Positions 3-62,600 of a DNA stretch of 64,000 nucleotides are shown here, in pieces; position 1 is the first letter of the stretch; the number at the start of each line of letters is the position of its first letter. Below the pieces are notes generated by a model that saw only the letters and a list, made by a program, of their open reading frames with translations, did not search any database and was not told the DNA's origin. Made by a program: the position numbers and the translations under genes. Where the stretch lies: positions 17,980,001 to 18,044,000 of the forward strand of contig JBHGNT010000018.1 in NCBI GenBank assembly GCA_043228905.1, written 5' to 3'. This DNA comes from Azolla caroliniana. Its lineage: Eukaryota > Plantae > Polypodiophyta.

Positions 3-3000
3 TTCTCATCCTACACAGCCGGTGAGCATGGCTGTGTTCGGATGGGAAATGAAGGTACGTGCCGGATTGCCGGCATAGGTGACGTGTGGTTGACAACCCC
101 GACTGGATGCAAAATGCTGCTGAAGGATGTCCGACACGTTCCGGAGGTTCGATTGAACCTGATTTCGGCCGGGAGGCTAGACGATGAAGGCTACACATGT
201 AGCATCCGGAACGGCGTAATGAAGTTCAGCAAGGGGAGCCTGATAGTGGCTCGGGCCCGGAAAGACAACACACTGTACCTGATGAATGCCCGGTTATGTC
301 CGGAAGAGTTGAATGTGGCAGCCGACACTGCCGGTGAGCTGTGGCACAAAAGACTGTGCCACATGAGTGAGAAGGGGATGAAGAGGCTTGCAGAAGACAA
401 CCTCATCCCAGTGAAGCATGTGCACCTGGAGAAGTGCACCGATTGCCTGGCCGGTAAGCAGAACCAAACCTCCTTCCACTCAAGGCCACCGACGAGACGT
501 AGCGCACCATTGGAGTTGGTGCACACTGACGTGTGTCAGGTAGAGACGAAGTCACATGGCGGAGCCCAGTACTTCGTAACATTCATCGATGATCATAGCC
601 GAAAACTGTGGACGGCACCGATGAAGACAAAGGACCAAGTGTTGTGCGTCTTCAAAGAACTCCACGCGAGAGTGGAAAGGGAATCCGGCAAGAAGCTGAA
701 AGCGATACGAGCGGATAACGGAGGGGAATACCGAGGGCAGTTCCAGGAGTACTGTCGCTCGAAGGGAATCCGACTCGAGTTTACTGTGCCGAAGACGCCG
801 GAACTGAACGGGCTGGCCGAGAGGATGAACCGGACCATAATGGAGAGGGTCCGGAGTATGCTGGCGCATGCGAAATTACCCAAGGGATTTTGGGCTGAGG
901 CAATGTCGACGGCGACATATGTGATAAACCGATCACCCTCAGTACCTTTGGACGGAGACACGCCGCAGAGAGTGTGGACCGGTAGGGAAGTATCTTACCG
1001 GCATCTGAAGGTGTTCGGGTGTCTCGCATACGTGCATGTGGCAAAGGACCGGAGAGGAAAGCTAGATCCAAAGACCCGGCCATGCATATTCCTCGGTTAC
1101 GGCGACGACGAGTTCGGCTACCGAGTATGGGACCCGGTTGACAAGAAGATATTCCGGAGTCGCGATATCATCTTCATGGAGAACAAGACACTCGCCGACT
1201 GGGAGTCGGAGAAGAAGATGAAGAGCTCCAAGTCGACCGGTGAGGATCAACTCTACGAGGAGCAGTCCCGACCGGCAAGGGACCGGTTAGCACTCGAGGA
1301 TCCGGCCGAAGACGGTGAAGAAACAGAACCGGCCGAAGAAGATGAAAATGATACCGGAACCGGCCCCGATCCCGAAATGGATTCGGATGAAGAAGAAGAA
1401 TCGGAAGAACCGGTTACCGAAGCTCCGGAACGGAGATATCCTCTAAGAGAGAGAAGGGCCCCCCGGAGATTTCCGGAACCAGAGCACGTGCTGCTAACCG
1501 ACGAGGGGGAGCCAGAGAGCTTTGAAGAAGCAAAACATGACACCCAGAGCCGCAGGTGGTTGAGTGCCATGCAGGACGAGATGGATTCCCTGCATGAGAA
1601 CCATACATATGAACTTGTGGAGTTGCCGAAAGGAAAGCGGGCACTTCGAAACAAGTGGGTGTTCAAGCTGAAACCGGGAGATGCCGGAAACCCCCCGAGA
1701 TACAAAGCCAGGATCGTGGTGAAGGGGTTTCAGCAGAAGAAGGGCGTCGACTTCGACGAGATATTTGCCCCGGTAGTGAAGATGACCTCCATCCGGACGG
1801 TGCTGAGCATAGCGGCAAGCATGGACCTCGAGGTAGAACAGATGGACGTGAAGACGGCATTCCTTCACGGTGACCTCGATGAAGAGATCTACATGCAGCA
1901 ACCGGAAGGATTCGAGAAGAAAGGGAAGGAGCACCTGGTATGCCGGTTGAAGAAGAGCCTCTACGGACTGAAGCAGGCCCCCCGGCAGTGGTACCGGAAG
2001 TTCGACTCCTTCATGACCGACGAAGGGTACCTCAAAACGCAGTCCGACCACTGCGTGTTTGTGAAGAAGTTCGAAGGAGGAGACTTTCTAATACTCCTCC
2101 TGTACGTGGACGACATGTTGATCGTCGGACGGGACCAGGTCAAGATACGGATGCTGAAGAAGGCTCTTCACCGAACCTTCTCAATGAAGGACCTGGGTCC
2201 GGCGAGGCAAATACTAGGGATGCACATCATCCGGGACCGGAAGAAGAAGCAGTTGTGGCTGTCACAGGAGAAGTACGTGACGAAGGTGCTTCACCGGTTC
2301 AACATGTCGGAAGCAAGACCGGTCGGATCGACACTCCCGGCAAACTGCAAGCTGTCCAGCAAGCAAAGTCCCAAGACAAAGGCTGAAAAGGAGGATATGA
2401 TGAAAGTGCCGTATGCCTCAGCCGTCAGGAGCTTGATGTACGCCATGGTGTGTACGAGACCGGACATCGGATATGCAGTCGGAGTGGTGAGCCGGTACAT
2501 GAGCAATCCCGGCAAAGAGCATTGGAACGCGGTCAAGTGGATACTCCGATACCTGAAGGGCACGGCAAACGTGTGCCTCCGATTCGGCTCCGGTAAGCCC
2601 GAACTCGACGGCTTCACCGATTCGGATATGTCGGCTGATGCAGATACCAGCCGGTCCACATCAGGGTATGTGATGACGTATGCAGGGGGAGCTGTTTCAT
2701 GGCAGTCGAGGCTGCAGAAGACGGTTGCGTTGTCAACCACGGAGGCGGAGTACATGGCGGCTGTAGAAGCCGGCAAGGAAATAATATGGATGAAGGACTT
2801 CATTAGAGAGCTCGGTATCCGGCAGGAGGAGTACCGACTCTACTGCGACAGTCAGAGTGCAATCCACCTTGCGAAGAACGCGGCCTATCACTCCCGGACG
2901 AAGCACATCCAGCGAAGATATCACTGGATCCGGGAAAGGATAGAAGACAAGGAGTTCGTGCTGACAAAGATCCACACGGACGAGAACGGGTCGGATATGC

Positions 3001-3080
3001 TGACCAAGGTCCTCACACCCGACAAGCTGGAAGCATGCCGGAAGAGGATCGGACTGGAAAGACATCCCATGCCGAAGTGA
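3..3080 (+). CDS. Copia Pol polyprotein, 5'-truncated by the window edge
   Basis: The frame is open from base 3 (FSSYTAGEHGCVRMGNEG, protease end). Motifs: GAG-pre-integrase WHKRLCHMS, integrase LVHTD...RADNGGEY...NGLAERMNRT, GKLDPK, RT KWVFK/YKARIV/QMDVKTAFLHG/KSLYGLKQAPRQW/LYVDD, RNase H TEAEY/YCDSQSAI/SDMLTK. Confidence 0.96.
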   Translation, partial: FSSYTAGEHGCVRMGNEGTCRIAGIGDVWLTTPTGCKMLLKDVRHVPEVRLNLISAGRLDDEGYTCSIRNGVMKFSKGSLIVARARKDNTLYLMNARLCPEELNVAADTAGELWHKRLCHMSEKGMKRLAEDNLIPVKHVHLEKCTDCLAGKQNQTSFHSRPPTRRSAPLELVHTDVCQVETKSHGGAQYFVTFIDDHSRKLWTAPMKTKDQVLCVFKELHARVERESGKKLKAIRADNGGEYRGQFQEYCRSKGIRLEFTVPKTPELNGLAERMNRTIMERVRSMLAHAKLPKGFWAEAMSTATYVINRSPSVPLDGDTPQRVWTGREVSYRHLKVFGCLAYVHVAKDRRGKLDPKTRPCIFLGYGDDEFGYRVWDPVDKKIFRSRDIIFMENKTLADWESEKKMKSSKSTGEDQLYEEQSRPARDRLALEDPAEDGEETEPAEEDENDTGTGPDPEMDSDEEEESEEPVTEAPERRYPLRERRAPRRFPEPEHVLLTDEGEPESFEEAKHDTQSRRWLSAMQDEMDSLHENHTYELVELPKGKRALRNKWVFKLKPGDAGNPPRYKARIVVKGFQQKKGVDFDEIFAPVVKMTSIRTVLSIAASMDLEVEQMDVKTAFLHGDLDEEIYMQQPEGFEKKGKEHLVCRLKKSLYGLKQAPRQWYRKFDSFMTDEGYLKTQSDHCVFVKKFEGGDFLILLLYVDDMLIVGRDQVKIRMLKKALHRTFSMKDLGPARQILGMHIIRDRKKKQLWLSQEKYVTKVLHRFNMSEARPVGSTLPANCKLSSKQSPKTKAEKEDMMKVPYASAVRSLMYAMVCTRPDIGYAVGVVSRYMSNPGKEHWNAVKWILRYLKGTANVCLRFGSGKPELDGFTDSDMSADADTSRSTSGYVMTYAGGAVSWQSRLQKTVALSTTEAEYMAAVEAGKEIIWMKDFIRELGIRQEEYRLYCDSQSAIHLAKNAAYHSRTKHIQRRYHWIRERIEDKEFVLTKIHTDENGSDMLTKVLTPDKLEACRKRIGLERHPMPK

Positions 3081-56500: not shown

Positions 56501-57619
56501 TGGAACTTTAGGAAACACTAAGCAATTATGTGCTGTTCGCAACCAAAAATATAATGGTTCGTAGAGGAGTAGTTTTGAATCAAACCCTTTTGTAGCCTTT
56601 GCTATTGAGTTTAACACACAATGTTATAAAAGGATGGGACTCGTGGAATACAAAGTGATTATATGCACGCACATAAAATAGATATATTCTTTGTATTACT
56701 TATGTGCCATTCTCAAAGAAATCATGCTTTTGTGGAGGAACAATAGATATACGCATAAAATAGCACATAGTTTGACATAAAAAAAATTAACAGAAAAAAA
56801 ACACAAAAAATTGTATACAGTACTGCTGCTGTATTGTTTAACAATCGATCCCATTAAAGGAGGAAATTCAGTAATGCTAAGAAAGAATGTGCTCTTAATC
56901 ACCTCTAAAAAATCTATACTTTTGAAATAAAGAGAAAATATACATCATAAACAAATTGATTTTTTTCTACATCAATTTAACAGAAATTGAGTTTAAACTA
57001 ACGCCACAGATTACAATAAGATACCATCTGTGGAGAAACAAACAAATATGCATATGTGGTTAACAGATACACATAAGAGGAAACGCTATAATAGAGTAAA
57101 GATGAAAGAAGCCCATAAAATGGACAGGAATAAACTGGTAAGCATGACAAAACATATCAATCATCAGCACAGTTAGTTGTCATATATGAGATATTATATC
57201 TTCTTACAGATGGAACATATAGAACCGAAACAGATGTGCAGATGAAATATCAGCGCGACTAGGTTTTAGCAGAGATGAAAGGTTGAGACGCATACAGAAA
57301 TAACAAGGTAAACATATGAGAATGAGCACAAACTATCACCCCACTAAATTCCGACAGAAAGTTAGGGTTTAGAAGATACAAAATATGACCTCTTACCTCC
57401 ATCTTTGAGATTTTCCTGACGGAACTGTTTGGGGATATGCTGAAAGGAGGCAGAGACGGGAGCGATTCGGTGGCGTCTGAGGGAAGGTCGAGAAACATCG
57501 AAGGTCGGGAGGAGGATACGGGCATCACCGGAGAGAGAAGAAGCGTGAAATCCGAGCGCAGAGAAGGTAGTCTTCGCCTCCGAAAGGGCAGTGGTCTGCG
57601 CAGGAAGAAGAGACGCCAT
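53507..57619 (-). CDS. CLPR1: Chloroplast Clp protease non-catalytic subunit ClpR1, 9 exons
   Basis: Transit peptide, then ClpR1-type LYGLSPSQMDMFMTEDSP, MYRGGGGGG...RPRTAPPDLPSLLLDARICYLGMPIVPAVTEL, ETEAYAIADT, AFGQAAMLL (catalytic Ser absent) and MWIK|AKELDANT. One intron is GC-AG. Confidence 0.95.
54860..55030 (+). mobile_element. Short non-LTR retrotransposon 3' remnant (RTE/RTEX-like cysteine motif) in ClpR1 intron 4
   Basis: HSLGIEVALWHR...ACKVCK and, after a frameshift, EVEYYLLFTCSAYSAIR resemble the HxLxIExGRW...CxxC...VEDExHxLFxCxxYxxIR motif. Confidence 0.6.
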
Positions 57620-57676
57620 AGCTTCGAAGCTTTGCTTCAGAAGAGAGAGGATGAGACTGAGGCGTGGAAGACAGAC

Positions 57677-57715
<39 letters not shown>

Positions 57716-57815
57716 TTATGTTATCGTGAAGTTTGATTGTTTTTTGGCTTTTTTTGGTTTTTGTTTTGACAGACATATAATTTTGGGCTCCTGTGGTCAG
57801 GTCAGTTATCGGCTG

Positions 57816-58240
57816 AGTCGGTCACTCGATTCAATTGGTCAATCCGTTTGTCAGTCGATCTGTTGTTTCATCGGATCAATCCATCAGTGGTTATAGCCAA
57901 TCGATCCACCGATTCAATCCACGAGTTAGTTTATCCATTCGTTGGTCGGTCGATCTGTTCATCGCTCGATCAGTCGGTCACTCGATCCATCGATTCAATT
58001 GGTCAATCCATTTGTCGGTTGATCTGTTGTTTCATTGGATCAATCCATCAGTAGTTATAGCCAATCGATCCACCGATTCAATCCGTCAGTTACTTTATCC
58101 ATTCGTCAGTTGATCAATCCATTCATCGCTTGATCAATCGATTCATCTGATCAATCCATCTATCAATCAATCGATTCATCAAGGCCAATCCATCAATCGG
58201 TCAATCAATTCATCATATCAATCCATCAACCAATCAATTG
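57816..58240. repeat. GATC/CAAT-rich repeat: duplication of about 160 bp decaying into a (CAAT/CGAT)n array, upstream of ClpR1
   Basis: AGTCGGTCACTCGAT...TTATAGCCAATCGATCCACCGATTCAATCC at about 57816 and 57972. Confidence 0.85.
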
Positions 58241-58254
58241 ATGCTCCAGAGGCT

Positions 58255-58710
58255 ATGAAAGTCATCAACATGCATCTAATTCCTATCTCCCCTTTTCAGC
58301 AACCTTGGAAGCAAATGTGTGTAGCCCATGTATGGAAAACAGTATCTACGGCTACATTATGGATCTCATGGAAGTGTCGTTGTAAAAGACGATATGATTC
58401 CATAATTCTTCTTCTCTCGGATATATTGCCGGAATTGTGGGAGAGCTTATTAGCAGTAGTGCGTGGGCAATATGACAATATGTCAGGCTCTTCGGAGGTT
58501 GCTCTTAAGAAAAGGAAAAAATTATTGCAGTTATAGAGAAAGTTGCCTCTGTTCACGGTCTCCTCTCAAGGACCAATCTGGAAATATCATCACCCCTTGC
58601 CCTTGCCTTGATCATCTTTCTTGTATATAACACTCATTGATTGTACATTTTGTAGCCTTCTGGCACTTTTTCTTAATACTAATGAAGGAAATCTTTTTGA
58701 AAAAAGAAGG
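58255..58710 (+). mobile_element. 3'-terminal fragment of a LINE (L1/Tx1-type) with short 3' UTR and A-rich end
   Basis: TATLWISWKCRCKRRY...LWESLLAVVRGQYDNMSG parallels VVWSIWTTKCTRVF...IWHTLITTLRVQYERIDG in the LINE at 31481-31729. Ends in TAATGAAGG...GAAAAAAG. Confidence 0.75.
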
Positions 58711-59015
58711 TAACATTGTGATATTCATGTTTAGTGGGGAATTTTCTCACCACCTGGGGGCCTTAGCAATTGAAGTGTCTCATTTTGGGGCATCATAATC
58801 ATTCTCTTTGCCCTAGCACCACTTGCCAATGTTTGCTTCATAGTAGATATTTTATCGTCCAAGACAAGGCCAAATTTAACCTATGGAACCAAATCAATAT
58901 ATCATGTTTTATGTGACTCCTTCCTAATAAGGCAGTTACTACTATGTAATAAAAACTCTCAATGTGATATTAATGCACACACATATGTACTCACCCTCCA
59001 ATAGATCATTAAGAC

Positions 59016-59638
59016 TGTTGTCCATGGGCCAAAAAAAGTAACATATGTGAATCGCAATAGGTATTAGGTAGCAGTAGGTAAACAACCGAAAGCAATCAAA
59101 AGCAGCCAAAATAAACACAGTTGTAAACGTGGAAGGAGAAGGAGCACGCCAAGGAACATCTATATAAGGAGCAATAGATCGAAGGAAGAAAGGAGAGACA
59201 TATAGGAGAGAAGTCTGAGGTCATTACGTAATTAATCATACCATAGTGTATCTGATACATTCCGGCATATAGCCGTGTAACTGTAATCATTGATCGTTCT
59301 GTAATCTAAACAATGTTGGGTCTATGTTGTGTCATTGTTCGCTTTTAATAATTGTTAAGTAACCCATCTCTCCCTATCGTGTATGCATAAGCGAATGTTT
59401 TCTCTTACGTAATCTGTAGGGTGTCATCCCATTTCGTAAAAGCGATATGACCACCACATACCACACTCCTTTGGTCAGATTCCGGTTAGGAATCGAAGGT
59501 GTCGCCTCCAGAGAGGAAGGCAACACAATTTGGCACACCTGATGGGACTCGAACCCACAATCCCTTGATTAGAAGTCAAGTGCCTTGTCCATTAGGCCAC
59601 AGGCACTTGACTTCTAATCAAGGGAGAGGAAGGCAACA
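59016..59638 (+). mobile_element. Single-LTR retroelement insertion carrying a full tRNA copy, flanked by the 5-bp TSD AAGAC
   Basis: AAGAC at 59011-59015 and 59639-59643. Termini TGTTG...CAACA. The LTR (59016-59525) has CTATATAAGG near 59160 and is followed by PBS-like TGGCACACC at 59531. Confidence 0.85.
59531..59606 (-). tRNA. tRNA-Arg(TCT) retro-copy with genomically encoded CCA, probably a pseudogene
   Basis: GTGCCTGTGGCCTAATGGACAAGGCACTTGACTTCTAATCAAGGGATTGTGGGTTCGAGTCCCATCAGGTGTGCCA: D-stem GCCT/AGGC, anticodon arm CTTGA-CT TCT AA-TCAAG, T-loop TTCGAGT. The acceptor stem has three G:T pairs, consistent in part with CpG decay. Confidence 0.9.
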
Positions 59639-62600
59639 AAGACCATTTCATACTGTTAAACACCCAACTACATGAGAAGAATTTTCTATTATTAGTTTTT
59701 TGTGCCTTACATCGGTTCCTGTGTTCCAAGCCTGTTTTGGCATTCTATCATCATGCATATGAGAGAGAGAGAGAGAGAGAGCTTGATAAGATAAATATAA
59801 AATCAGGGAAGAGAGAAAAGGGTTAGTGAGTGCGGATAGTGTGTGGGTCGCAAGTTGTGAGTGGAATAAATTGTCCTTGGCATAGGCAAGAGGAAATGGG
59901 ACTAATTGTGTGATCCATAAGTAGAGTGGGCGTCGACTAAGTGAGGTGTGTGTGTGTGTGTGCACTCTCTAATATATGATTGTATCTATTAAAATTTGAC
60001 GTTTGAGCTACTTACAAATTTCTCACTAAGTAGAGTCTAGGTTGCCCAAATGATTCAAATTAGTAGGTGATTCGAACGATGCATCATATGACTTTAATGA
60101 GGTATATGAGAGGTCAACTTGTTGGAGTTAGTGTATGAATCAAATGAGTCAAGTGAGACAGTGACTTGATGGATTCATTGGATGATTGGAATGAGTCAGA
60201 CGAGACGTCGACTCATTGGACCTAATTATGCACTTGAGAGGGAAAGTCTTGACCTATTATGCTTAATTACTCAAATATATAGGCATTAAGTTATTATCAC
60301 AGTAAACAATGAAAAGGAAATGGCAATGAGATCAATTAAGAGACAAAAGATGGTCCACAAGAGTTACAACCACCAACCCAAACCATTGAGATTAAGGTTT
60401 AAGGTTAGGGTCTTGAGGTAATATTAATTAGGATTAATGGAGGGAGGTTGAAGGTCTAGCTCAAGTTTTCTAAATGTTAGGAAGAAGTTAAATAGTCTTA
60501 TTCAAATGTATTTTATACTTTTTATAATGCTCTTGGTGTTTTGACACATAGTTATAAGTCTCTCTATCCTCTTGTCCTCGTCTTCAATAATTTTTCTCTT
60601 TTCCTTATTACTATTATTATTCCTTCATTTCTAATCAATGTTTTGGTGTTCAAATTTGGTAAAAAAACGCTCATGCAATGCATCCCTATGATCCCACATG
60701 AGGTGTCCATGTTGATAATTCAATATGTATTTGGGAAAGGTCACCATGCTCCAAGACAAACCGGAAGTGCTAGCAATCAAAAGTGTGAATTACCAAGTTC
60801 CAACAACAAGCACATATTCTGACATAACAAAACTTATACATGGTGGACCAACTCAAAATAGGCCACAATGAGATCTCATTACACAACCTAGCTAAAGTTT
60901 CCACCACCAACCTATGTGAATCACTTGAACACCAACTAGCAGAATCCTAATATACGAGACAGAGAACCCAAGTGGAACTCCATTGACTAGAAGAAGAGTT
61001 GTGGATTACTACTACATGATTGGAAGAGGAGAAGAAAGAACCCACATGTGGCCCCCGATATCTACACAAAAGCACTCTTCACGATGGCCAAAAAGTTTAA
61101 AAATGAACATGACATTCACTTGAGGCATCGAAGGAACTCTCGACAACCATAGATGCTAGGCTCAAAGTTTTGATTTGGAATGCCCATAGGCTCCCTTGCA
61201 AATCCAAGGCAAACACAAAGAAGTTTAGAGAGCTCCGCAAATGACAAAAATTATTGGTCACCAACCTCAAAGTTTAAGGAGTGAAATAGAATGCAACCAA
61301 CTCCAAGTCAAGACATCGAAGATAAAGGCTCTCATCACAACCATGGAATCATAACTCAAAGCAACACAAAGCTTGACTATGATACCATATATACCACTAG
61401 GAGAAGGAGTCCAAGTAGTAGTGATGGCACAACTCAACGATTGGATTATCTACAGATGTTTTATCTATTCTTCCTCGTATCTCTATTAACTAATGTATGT
61501 GCTCTAATTTAACAATACAAGAGACATGATCAAAGGATAAAGTTTCAATGATGGCATTCCTCTTGCTTTCTTGTGACAATGTTTTTTTTACTATACATTC
61601 ACTCATGGGCTTGAGAGCTATGTGTTTATACTTAACTAGTAAAGCATATAAGACTACATTGGGTGTGATCAACGAGTATTTGTCACAAGCTAAATCCAAC
61701 ATTTTTCATGTGAATGTTGTGGGACAGAATTGTTCTAAGTCATGGTCAATATTGAATACAAAGGGAGATTTCCATATTATTATATTGAATTCTCTTCAAG
61801 CGAACAAATAAGGAGAGTATACCAATAATGATCAAATTCAAGTGAGAACGATCTATATTTAAAAATAAACAAGGTATTTAGTTGGGCATCCATGCAATGT
61901 GATAACCTTGTCATTTTCACATTTTAATTAGGGCAATTAGAATCCCCCATGGGGCCAAACACATAATTGTAATCTTCTCAGTAGATCCAATGTAAAAAGT
62001 GTGAGTACTTGTTTGACTTCTTGACGTGTTACTTTAGATGAGTATTTGAGCATACAAGAAAGGAAAGCATAGGTAACCACTTGTTCATCAATGACACAAA
62101 ATCTAACCAATTTGTTGAATATTTCTTTTACTCGATGTTGTTTGGAGTCTAAATCTTCACCAACACAAGGGCTATGAACGAATCTTCATAGAGTTGGAGA
62201 ACAATTCAATTGGTTTTTGTCGTTTCCGCTTTCCTAGACATGGGTTCCTTTGAATTTGTTGAAGGGTTTCCACTAGTCGATTAAAAATGAAACTAGTGTT
62301 AACGAGGTCGTAACAACCTATTGGTTAAAATGGGCAATATTGAGGTGAATTTGCATTAGTGGTATGTGCATATAGGGAGTGTTTACTCAAACAATTTAAG
62401 CATTGTTTTTCCTTATTGGATTCCATCTTCACGCGTCTAAATTTAAATTGTTTTTTCTCAAACCATAGAGACACATATTTTTTAAGTCACTAGATCAAAA
62501 TGTTTGTAATGTCTTTGAAGTGTCCACTTTATTGCCTTCTATTTGATGTTATATTGGTAGATAGCACTAGTTGGGGTCTTCATTGTTCCTTTTACCTAAA

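Follow-up and report, generated by a model that had tools for sequence, protein, structure and literature searches.

Textbook retroviral replication relies on the reverse transcriptase (RT) stopping 18 nucleotides (nt) into the primer transfer RNA (tRNA), and the consequences of a failed stop have been inferred mostly from cell-culture mutants. When HIV-1 lacks the RT stops at m1A58/m5Um54, the plus-strand complementary DNA (cDNA) enters the tRNA and is non-complementary after transfer, and such read-through DNA was reported not to be integrable (PMC8599865). tRNA-Arg is a usual primer of plant non-chromovirus Ty3/gypsy retrotransposons, with 10% of elements (PMC6317226). A tRNA- or 5S-like sequence is also carried inside both long terminal repeats (LTRs) of Helenus, Ajax and Cassandra (TRIMp3), for which the insertion of a short interspersed nuclear element (SINE) has been proposed as the origin (PMC10886601). 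The present analysis concerns a 623-bp unit in a stretch of 64,000 nt from Azolla caroliniana (assembly GCA_043228905.1, contig JBHGNT010000018.1, positions 17,980,001 to 18,044,000), referred to below as the window and numbered from its first letter. The unit contains a single complete LTR and, at the position of the primer-binding site (PBS), the complement of an entire tRNA-Arg(TCT) with its CCA end. The explanation in which we place about even confidence is that the unit is the integrated aberrant reverse-transcription product of a tRNA-Arg-primed, Ty3/gypsy-related LTR element.

Much of the unit agrees with canonical plus-strand strong-stop DNA and its PBS, namely the LTR, the short spacer, the TGG followed by the complement of the tRNA 3′ end, the TG..CA termini and the 5-bp target-site duplication (TSD). 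A canonical PBS, however, copies about 18 nt of the primer, whereas the copy in the window comprises 76 nt and is accompanied by neither an internal region, nor a polypurine tract (PPT), nor a full second LTR. The likeness to HIV-1 read-through is that the plus-strand cDNA extends into the primer tRNA. The latter was observed in a cell system with the stops missing, while the host in the window is a plant retrotransposon whose product was integrated and inherited, apparently after rescue by microhomology. A strong-stop-DNA model for the origin of tRNA-derived SINEs was reportedly put forward by Ohshima, Okada and colleagues in 1993. Read on its minus strand, the unit gives tRNA, CCA, spacer and U5 with the rest of the LTR, which is the layout postulated for the precursor; it departs from the model in having a complete LTR and not R-U5 only, integrase-type ends with a TSD, and no tail of the type left by long interspersed nuclear elements (LINEs). 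In an incomplete coverage of the literature, no report was found of whole-primer tRNA copies at the PBS, or of a tRNA half replacing the PPT, in plant LTR elements.

Structure and insertion of the 623-bp unit

An earlier note on this DNA had listed a TSD, an LTR, a spacer, a tRNA and a terminal 15-nt LTR copy, and all of these parts were found at the same coordinates when the sequence was read and checked by script. The unit lies between a left TSD, AAGAC (59011–59015), and a right TSD, also AAGAC (59639–59643), neither of which is assigned to a strand. It opens with a complete 510-bp LTR on the plus strand (59016–59525, TGTTG...CAACA), presumably running from U3 to U5, and continues with the 5-nt spacer CAATT between LTR and PBS (59526–59530, plus strand). 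After this spacer, the PBS reads TGGCACACCTGATGGGAC and falls within the range of 0–5 nt from a 5′ LTR. Its canonical 18-nt part (59531–59548, plus strand), which is the complement of the tRNA-Arg 3′ end including CCA, is the single match to TGGCACGCCTGGTGGGAC in the window, with 2 mismatches and 0 matches expected by chance; no other tRNA-Arg 3′-end site occurs in the window. The complementarity continues over the whole molecule. A tRNA-Arg(tct) of 76 nt including CCA was called on the minus strand at 59531–59606 by ARAGORN, and the Rfam tRNA model matched 59534–59606 with 62 bits (E 1e-12), the remaining 59531–59533 being the complement of CCA.

The antisense tRNA copy contains the first arm of a fold-back (59561–59585, plus strand), which would have been the template of a second arm (59601–59625, plus strand), a sense copy of tRNA positions 22–46. 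The two arms form an inverted repeat of 25 nt with 100% complementarity and a loop of 15 nt, and the DNA folding energy is −34.4 kcal/mol (z = −9.5 against shuffles). The earlier note had described a sense copy of the anticodon arm; the sense copy is indeed present, and its extent is 25 nt rather than the arm alone. The hexamer AGGCAC at 59601–59606 doubles as the complement of tRNA positions 6–1, forming a microhomology. Because it fits both copies, the end of the antisense copy is ambiguous between tRNA positions 7 and 1, while templating by the fold-back is unambiguous for 59607–59623. The A at 59605 may, for its part, have been templated by the fold-back or have arisen as a later CpG transition, rather than being a certain mutation. 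The fold-back overlaps by 2 nt (GA, 59624–59625) with an exact 15-nt copy of the LTR 3′ terminus (GAGAGGAAGGCAACA, 59624–59638, plus strand), which equals 59511–59525 in 15/15 positions and provides a second ...CA end. Matches of microRNA (miRNA) families over the hairpin were far under the Rfam gathering scores and are explained by the fold-back.

The TG...CA termini, the 5-bp TSD and the empty site present elsewhere are those of an integrase-type insertion. The usual classes of LTR-derived elements do not accommodate the remaining features. A single LTR in its original TSD resembles a solo LTR; recombination between two LTRs, in contrast, leaves nothing between the LTR and the TSD, whereas here 113 nt (59526–59638), consisting of spacer, tRNA, fold-back and 15-nt LTR end, separate the LTR from the right TSD. 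A terminal-repeat retrotransposon in miniature (TRIM), which has two short LTRs and a PPT, was likewise rejected, as the window copy has one LTR only. The 510-bp LTR occurs once within the 64-kb window, accompanied only by the final 15 nt of a second, and no PPT precedes the 3′ LTR end of the window copy. Helenus, Ajax and Cassandra share with the unit a small non-autonomous structure, a part resembling a small-RNA gene with RNA polymerase III (Pol III) boxes, and a 5-bp TSD, and are known from plants and fungi. In the window, unlike in these elements, the tRNA occupies the PBS and not the LTR; it is an antisense, full-length copy that includes CCA, and it belongs to the element's own primer species. 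Helenus was rejected because ARAGORN and Rfam found a tRNA only at 59531–59606, outside the LTR. Cassandra and retrozymes were rejected after an Rfam scan of 58500–60200 (E<=1), which returned only the tRNA and weak hairpin look-alikes, with no 5S or hammerhead.

Contigs of four organisms (A, B, C and D, from four studies) were aligned to 57600–61100 at 80% likeness; the figures given here are those of the contigs listed, and depth is the sum over all contigs. Logan contigs of two independent studies extend across the two outer junctions and the fold-back, including the second arm. In organism A, a unitig (58868–59066) spans the left junction with 0 differences, and a contig (59572–61100) takes in the loop, the second arm, the 15-mer and the TSD together with 1.5 kb of flanking DNA. 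An equivalent contig of organism B covers 59571–59894 (0 substitutions, 2 gaps). The LTR/tRNA junction of organism A (59525–59531) lies outside the individual pieces listed. The outer junctions, about which the earlier note had asked for read support, are thus reproduced in independent material.

In organisms C and D, two related species, and in one contig of B, position 59010 is joined to 59642 with CAA between them, so that the empty site consists of 5 nt (CAAAC) in place of the 5 + 623 + 5 nt of 59011–59643. These empty sites, in C, D and one B haplotype, contain neither the LTR nor the tRNA. Because the TSD encloses the unit in full and neither component is present at the empty site, the LTR and the tRNA arrived together, as had been proposed earlier for an integrase-mediated insertion. 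There was accordingly no tRNA at this site before the LTR arrived, and an orthologous locus with the tRNA alone, which would have refuted the earlier proposal, was not encountered in these organisms. Organism B carries both a filled site identical to that of A and an empty site with single-nucleotide polymorphisms (SNPs) common to C and D. The B empty-site contig has a depth of 9.09, equal to that of the single-copy left-flank contig with C/D-type SNPs, and B looks like a hybrid or allopolyploid of A-like and C/D-like genomes. The summed depth over the LTR body amounts to approximately 900–1300 in A, 500–750 in B and 20–140 in C and D, against about 15 in the A flanks, and the LTR family is amplified in the A lineage. 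At 59589–59705, however, no depth excess was found in A relative to C and D, although the LTR is 20–60 times more abundant in A.

The tRNA-Arg copy and its relatives in other plant DNA

The retrocopy is identical to plant tRNA-Arg(TCT) genes and retrocopies in 63–67 of 73 positions. Its acceptor stem contains three G.T pairs, and it keeps 1 of 5 CpGs, while the LTR keeps 18. It differs from the retrocopy of the L002 relative described below at six positions, four of which are CpG transitions (C2T, C6T, G67A and C70T). The A box TGGCCTAATGGA and the B box GGTTCGAGTCC are intact, and the first T4 on the minus strand is found 165 nt from the tRNA start, inside the LTR. Judged by these features, the window tRNA is a decayed pseudogene; it is of the land-plant type of tRNA-Arg(UCU). 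The plant tRNA-Arg(TCT) genes that were recovered do not encode CCA and end in Pol III terminators. Because the CCA is present and the orientation is that of an antisense PBS, the source of the copy was a mature primer tRNA, of which far more than the usual 18 nt was copied; this supports the earlier claim that RT had read through the whole primer. A genuine nuclear tRNA-Arg(UCU) gene was rejected as an interpretation, in view of the encoded CCA, the T4 at a distance of 165 nt, the three G.T pairs and the empty site in relatives. Two further interpretations of the tRNA sequence were also discarded. A26 and G44 are not misincorporation scars of RT, as they are the normal state in the land-plant-type tRNA genes L063, L115 and L077. 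The compensatory change between C6-G67 and T6-A67 does not indicate independent capture, as both changes are CpG transitions at paired CpGs.

Relatives were sought in metagenome contigs. A stricter pattern, the tRNA-Arg 3′ part with CCA, gave no match in metagenome and viral contigs, while a looser tRNA-Arg(TCT) core pattern applied to the metagenome contigs yielded 120 loci. Most of these are ordinary genes that lack CCA and end in a T-run terminator, and three (L094, L002 and L084) are of the retro type. In L094, a 504-bp LTR, which starts with TGTTGTCCATAGGCC and ends in GATAACA, is followed by CAATT, the same spacer as in the window, then by a complete antisense tRNA-Arg with CCA and by internal sequence. 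L002, from a sister sample of L094, belongs to the same family (90–97% identity); in it, the tRNA leads into a segment of about 440 nt (X), the 3′ LTR and the flank, and the last base of the spacer is visible at the contig end. Taken together, L094 and L002 fit a small non-autonomous element with an LTR of about 505 bp and an internal part of about 520 bp including the tRNA. They represent a two-LTR, multi-copy family from two samples, so that LTR relatives with an Arg PBS, whose absence would have spoken against the earlier proposal, do exist.

The identity between the window LTR and the L094/L002 LTR is about 50% overall, with shuffles reaching 38–49%. The two agree in length, in the first 15 and the last 30 nt, in several blocks in between and in the CAATT spacer. 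Moreover, all three LTRs (window, L094 and L002) have a CTATATAA motif at a distance of about 145 nt from their start; in the window this corresponds to TATATAA at 59161–59167 (plus strand), a candidate TATA box in view of its common position. On these similarities, the window LTR can be assigned to the L094/L002 lineage as a distant member.

The third locus, L084, has an unrelated LTR end (…GGTCATACA) with the spacer ATG, followed by a whole but decayed antisense tRNA-Arg with CCA. About 36 nt past the tRNA 5′ end, on the same strand, lies a Ty3/gypsy integrase core (DFVGPF…ATDYYTKWVE…HGNHF; Pfam rve, E 2.5e-5 on a stop-free fragment). Because this integrase is coded on the same strand, the tRNA complement sits downstream of the 5′ LTR, at the PBS. 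In the reverse LTR orientation, considered because TATATA is nearly palindromic, the tRNA would stand as a sense copy before a 3′ LTR; this was rejected in view of the strand of the L084 integrase and the conserved TATATAA. Gag, protease, RT, RNase H and the integrase N-terminus (zinc finger) are missing from L084. In this Gypsy element (L084:465–840), the frame that remains is interrupted by several stops.

In each of the three contexts, the window, L084 and L094/L002, the loss of internal sequence begins at the 5′ end of the tRNA. Segment X occurs a second time in L094, upstream of the LTR and with a different internal sequence before it, and the homology of the two X copies starts at most about 5 nt from the tRNA end. 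In the window, the tRNA leads through the fold-back into the terminal LTR copy. Decay at stem positions is seen in the window, L094 and L084 copies, whereas the acceptor stem of L002 is fully paired.

A sense tRNA-Arg 3′ half ending in CCA was also observed about 70 nt ahead of the 3′ LTR in L002 (reverse strand) and in L094 (1365–1434). It comprises 45–50 nt (tRNA positions 32/45–76 plus CCA), ends 2 nt from the 3′ LTR and reaches an alignment score of 32, compared with a mean of 15.8 and a maximum of 28 in 500 shuffles. The L002 half contains a 13-nt insertion in the T loop. No PPT precedes the 3′ LTR of L002 and L094. The sense tRNA half at the PPT position may reflect tRNA-dependent priming of the plus strand, which is not needed to account for the window element.

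Proposed primer read-through and alternative explanations

According to the favoured explanation, the plus-strand strong-stop DNA (U3-R-U5-CAATT) would have run past the stop at about 18 nt and through the whole mature tRNA-Arg(UCU), including CCA, and copying would have ended at the tRNA 5′ end or at most 6 nt before it. A break at this end is to be expected, because the tRNA molecule is the template and nothing is left to copy at its 5′ end. The resulting tail would be unable to make the PBS-guided second transfer and would have been rescued by microhomology jumps; because the tail mismatches the minus strand beyond the PBS, synthesis could continue only after a non-homologous jump. In this process, the 3′ end (…AGGC[A/G]C) may have paired with GTGCCT 22 nt upstream on the same strand and been extended by 19 nt, the AGGCAC/GTGCCT self-complementarity being built into tRNA-Arg. 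A second jump via GA would have led onto the minus-strand copy of U5, with synthesis running off after 15 nt plus the spacer, and integrase would finally have trimmed the product to CA and inserted a 623-bp, TG/CA-ended DNA with a 5-bp duplication. We infer both the order of the jumps and their occurrence before integration. Templating of the sense fragment by the unit itself is favoured because the arms match in 25/25 positions, compared with the degenerate inherited sense copies of the relatives; for the same reason, it is less likely that the fragment is the remnant of an inherited sense tRNA half.

The core of the interpretation in the earlier note, capture of the whole primer tRNA by read-through and its integration with the LTR, is supported, but the unit is not a unique accident, as the same architecture occurs in two other families on independent DNA. 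Primer read-through appears, from the sequences compared, to be a recurrent way of making internally deleted, tRNA-carrying non-autonomous elements in this lineage and not a one-off. Several points weigh against this explanation of the window unit. The break may be located up to 6 nt inside the tRNA instead of at its end. A58 is read as A, and no misincorporation scar proves passage over m1A58. The tRNA copy may have been inherited from a parent element and not made in this event. In addition, repair of a later deletion by a polymerase-theta-type pathway would give an identical fold-back filler and 15-nt remnant.

The last of these points leads to an alternative that we regard as plausible, with a probability well short of even, in which a two-LTR element of the L094/L002 type was inserted and later suffered a double-strand break, whose repair by microhomology-mediated end joining removed the interior and left no more than 15 bp of the 3′ LTR, with fold-back synthesis supplying an inverted filler of 19 nt. 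The L094/L002 family provides exactly such two-LTR relatives with the whole tRNA complement in multiple copies, and the junctions in the window show microhomologies of 6 nt and 2 nt together with a locally templated inverted insertion, a combination which is a known signature of theta-mediated end joining. Truncation of plant LTR elements by illegitimate recombination is common, as stated by Devos et al. (2002) according to PMC6894440. The left break, on the other hand, must by chance hit at most 6 nt from the tRNA 5′ end, as in L084 and L094/L002. The arms are perfect though the tRNA has 5–6 substitutions, which would fit a younger event, but the arms contain no CpG and their perfect match is therefore weak evidence on age. 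A further possibility is that the tRNA complement is a selected module, either an extended PBS or the partner of the sense 3′ half, so that the window would hold a broken member and read-through would concern only an ancient origin. The whole tRNA complement is retained in at least three diverged families, the acceptor stem of L002 is fully paired, and in L002 and L094 a sense half with its CCA, 2 nt from the 3′ LTR, takes the place of a PPT. We nevertheless consider the module unlikely, as the window, L094 and L084 copies are decayed at stem positions and in each case seen the tRNA 5′ end is where the internal deletion begins, as expected of a scar and not of a module embedded in an intact leader.

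It is quite improbable that the 623-bp unit is itself a mobile non-autonomous one-LTR family, perhaps transcribed by Pol III, like the Cassandra and Helenus TRIMs or a nascent tRNA-SINE. The earlier note had offered a small family with Pol III boxes, analogous to Cassandra, as its alternative, and of this the intact A and B boxes stand, with the first T4 165 nt from the tRNA start on the minus strand, while the location of the tRNA outside the LTR and its antisense orientation speak against the analogy. Both ends of the unit are of the TG..CA form with a TSD, as a mobile family would have. The unit is nonetheless a single copy in the window, and no depth excess occurs at 59589–59705 in A versus C and D. 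As it has neither an R repeat at both ends nor a PPT, the LTR replication scheme could not restore it, and a Pol III transcript would be antisense and would stop inside the LTR. The tRNA-related head with its two Pol III boxes agrees with a tRNA-derived SINE, which was rejected because the minus-strand 3′ end ...GGACAACA has no tail and the tRNA-proximal part shows no depth excess in A. Finally, an assembly artefact, or a solo LTR standing by chance beside a tRNA pseudogene, has a practically negligible probability. Palindromes and repeats can be misassembled, but short-read unitigs of two other studies reproduce the outer junctions and the fold-back. Against chance neighbours, the TSD brackets the whole unit, the empty site is without the tRNA, and the CCA and the PBS register are as expected of a primer copy.

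Surroundings of the insertion and significance of the proposed primer read-through

The insertion is surrounded by several other repeats. Just upstream, all four organisms have a high-copy repeat at 58239–58705, where the summed depth reaches the thousands. Its copies stop at 58705, and the A-rich tails found beyond that point suggest an element of the SINE or LINE type. A further repeat is found at about 58867–58932, and 58000–58250 is occupied by an array of degenerate short direct repeats with TCAATCGATTCATC-like units. A (GA)n microsatellite lies at 59763–59781, about 120 nt downstream of the insertion. Farther away, an uninterrupted open reading frame (ORF) of 1012 amino acids (42–3080, plus strand) encodes a Ty1/copia pol (gag_pre-integrs, rve, RVT_2) unrelated to the 510-bp LTR. 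Exact-protein look-ups of this Copia ORF and of two ORFs inside the LTR gave no record in the public collection searched. At 59533–59543, about 13–15 contigs each in A, C and D match the tRNA-Arg complement from 59533 onward; the stretch upstream of it (ATTGAATCACAGTTT... in C and D) is fairly conserved among them and does not contain the TGG of CCA. In organism B, TGGCACGCCTGG is carried by 21 contigs. Several repeated tRNA-Arg-derived families, with and without CCA, seem to exist.

A wider proposal, which we advance tentatively and consider on balance doubtful, is that read-through combined with non-homologous plus-strand transfer is a systematic, lineage-wide generator of non-autonomous LTR elements and tRNA retrocopies among tRNA-Arg-primed plant Gypsy elements. 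The sense 3′ half would then suggest tRNA priming of both strands, and the window would hold the minimal product, effectively strong-stop DNA that was integrated and a natural case of the tRNA-CCA-U5 intermediate postulated as a precursor of tRNA-derived SINEs. On the favoured explanation of primer read-through, the window locus and its three independent look-alikes would be heritable fossils of a failed RT stop. This suggests a simple mechanism for the birth of internally deleted elements similar to TRIMs or large retrotransposon derivatives (LARDs), with the break at the tRNA 5′ end, and a link to the architecture in which a sense tRNA-Arg 3′ half occupies the PPT position. It also suggests a route by which LTR elements may spread tRNA copies that are full-length, include CCA and keep their Pol III boxes intact, which bears on the annotation of tRNA genes and on ideas about the origin of SINEs.

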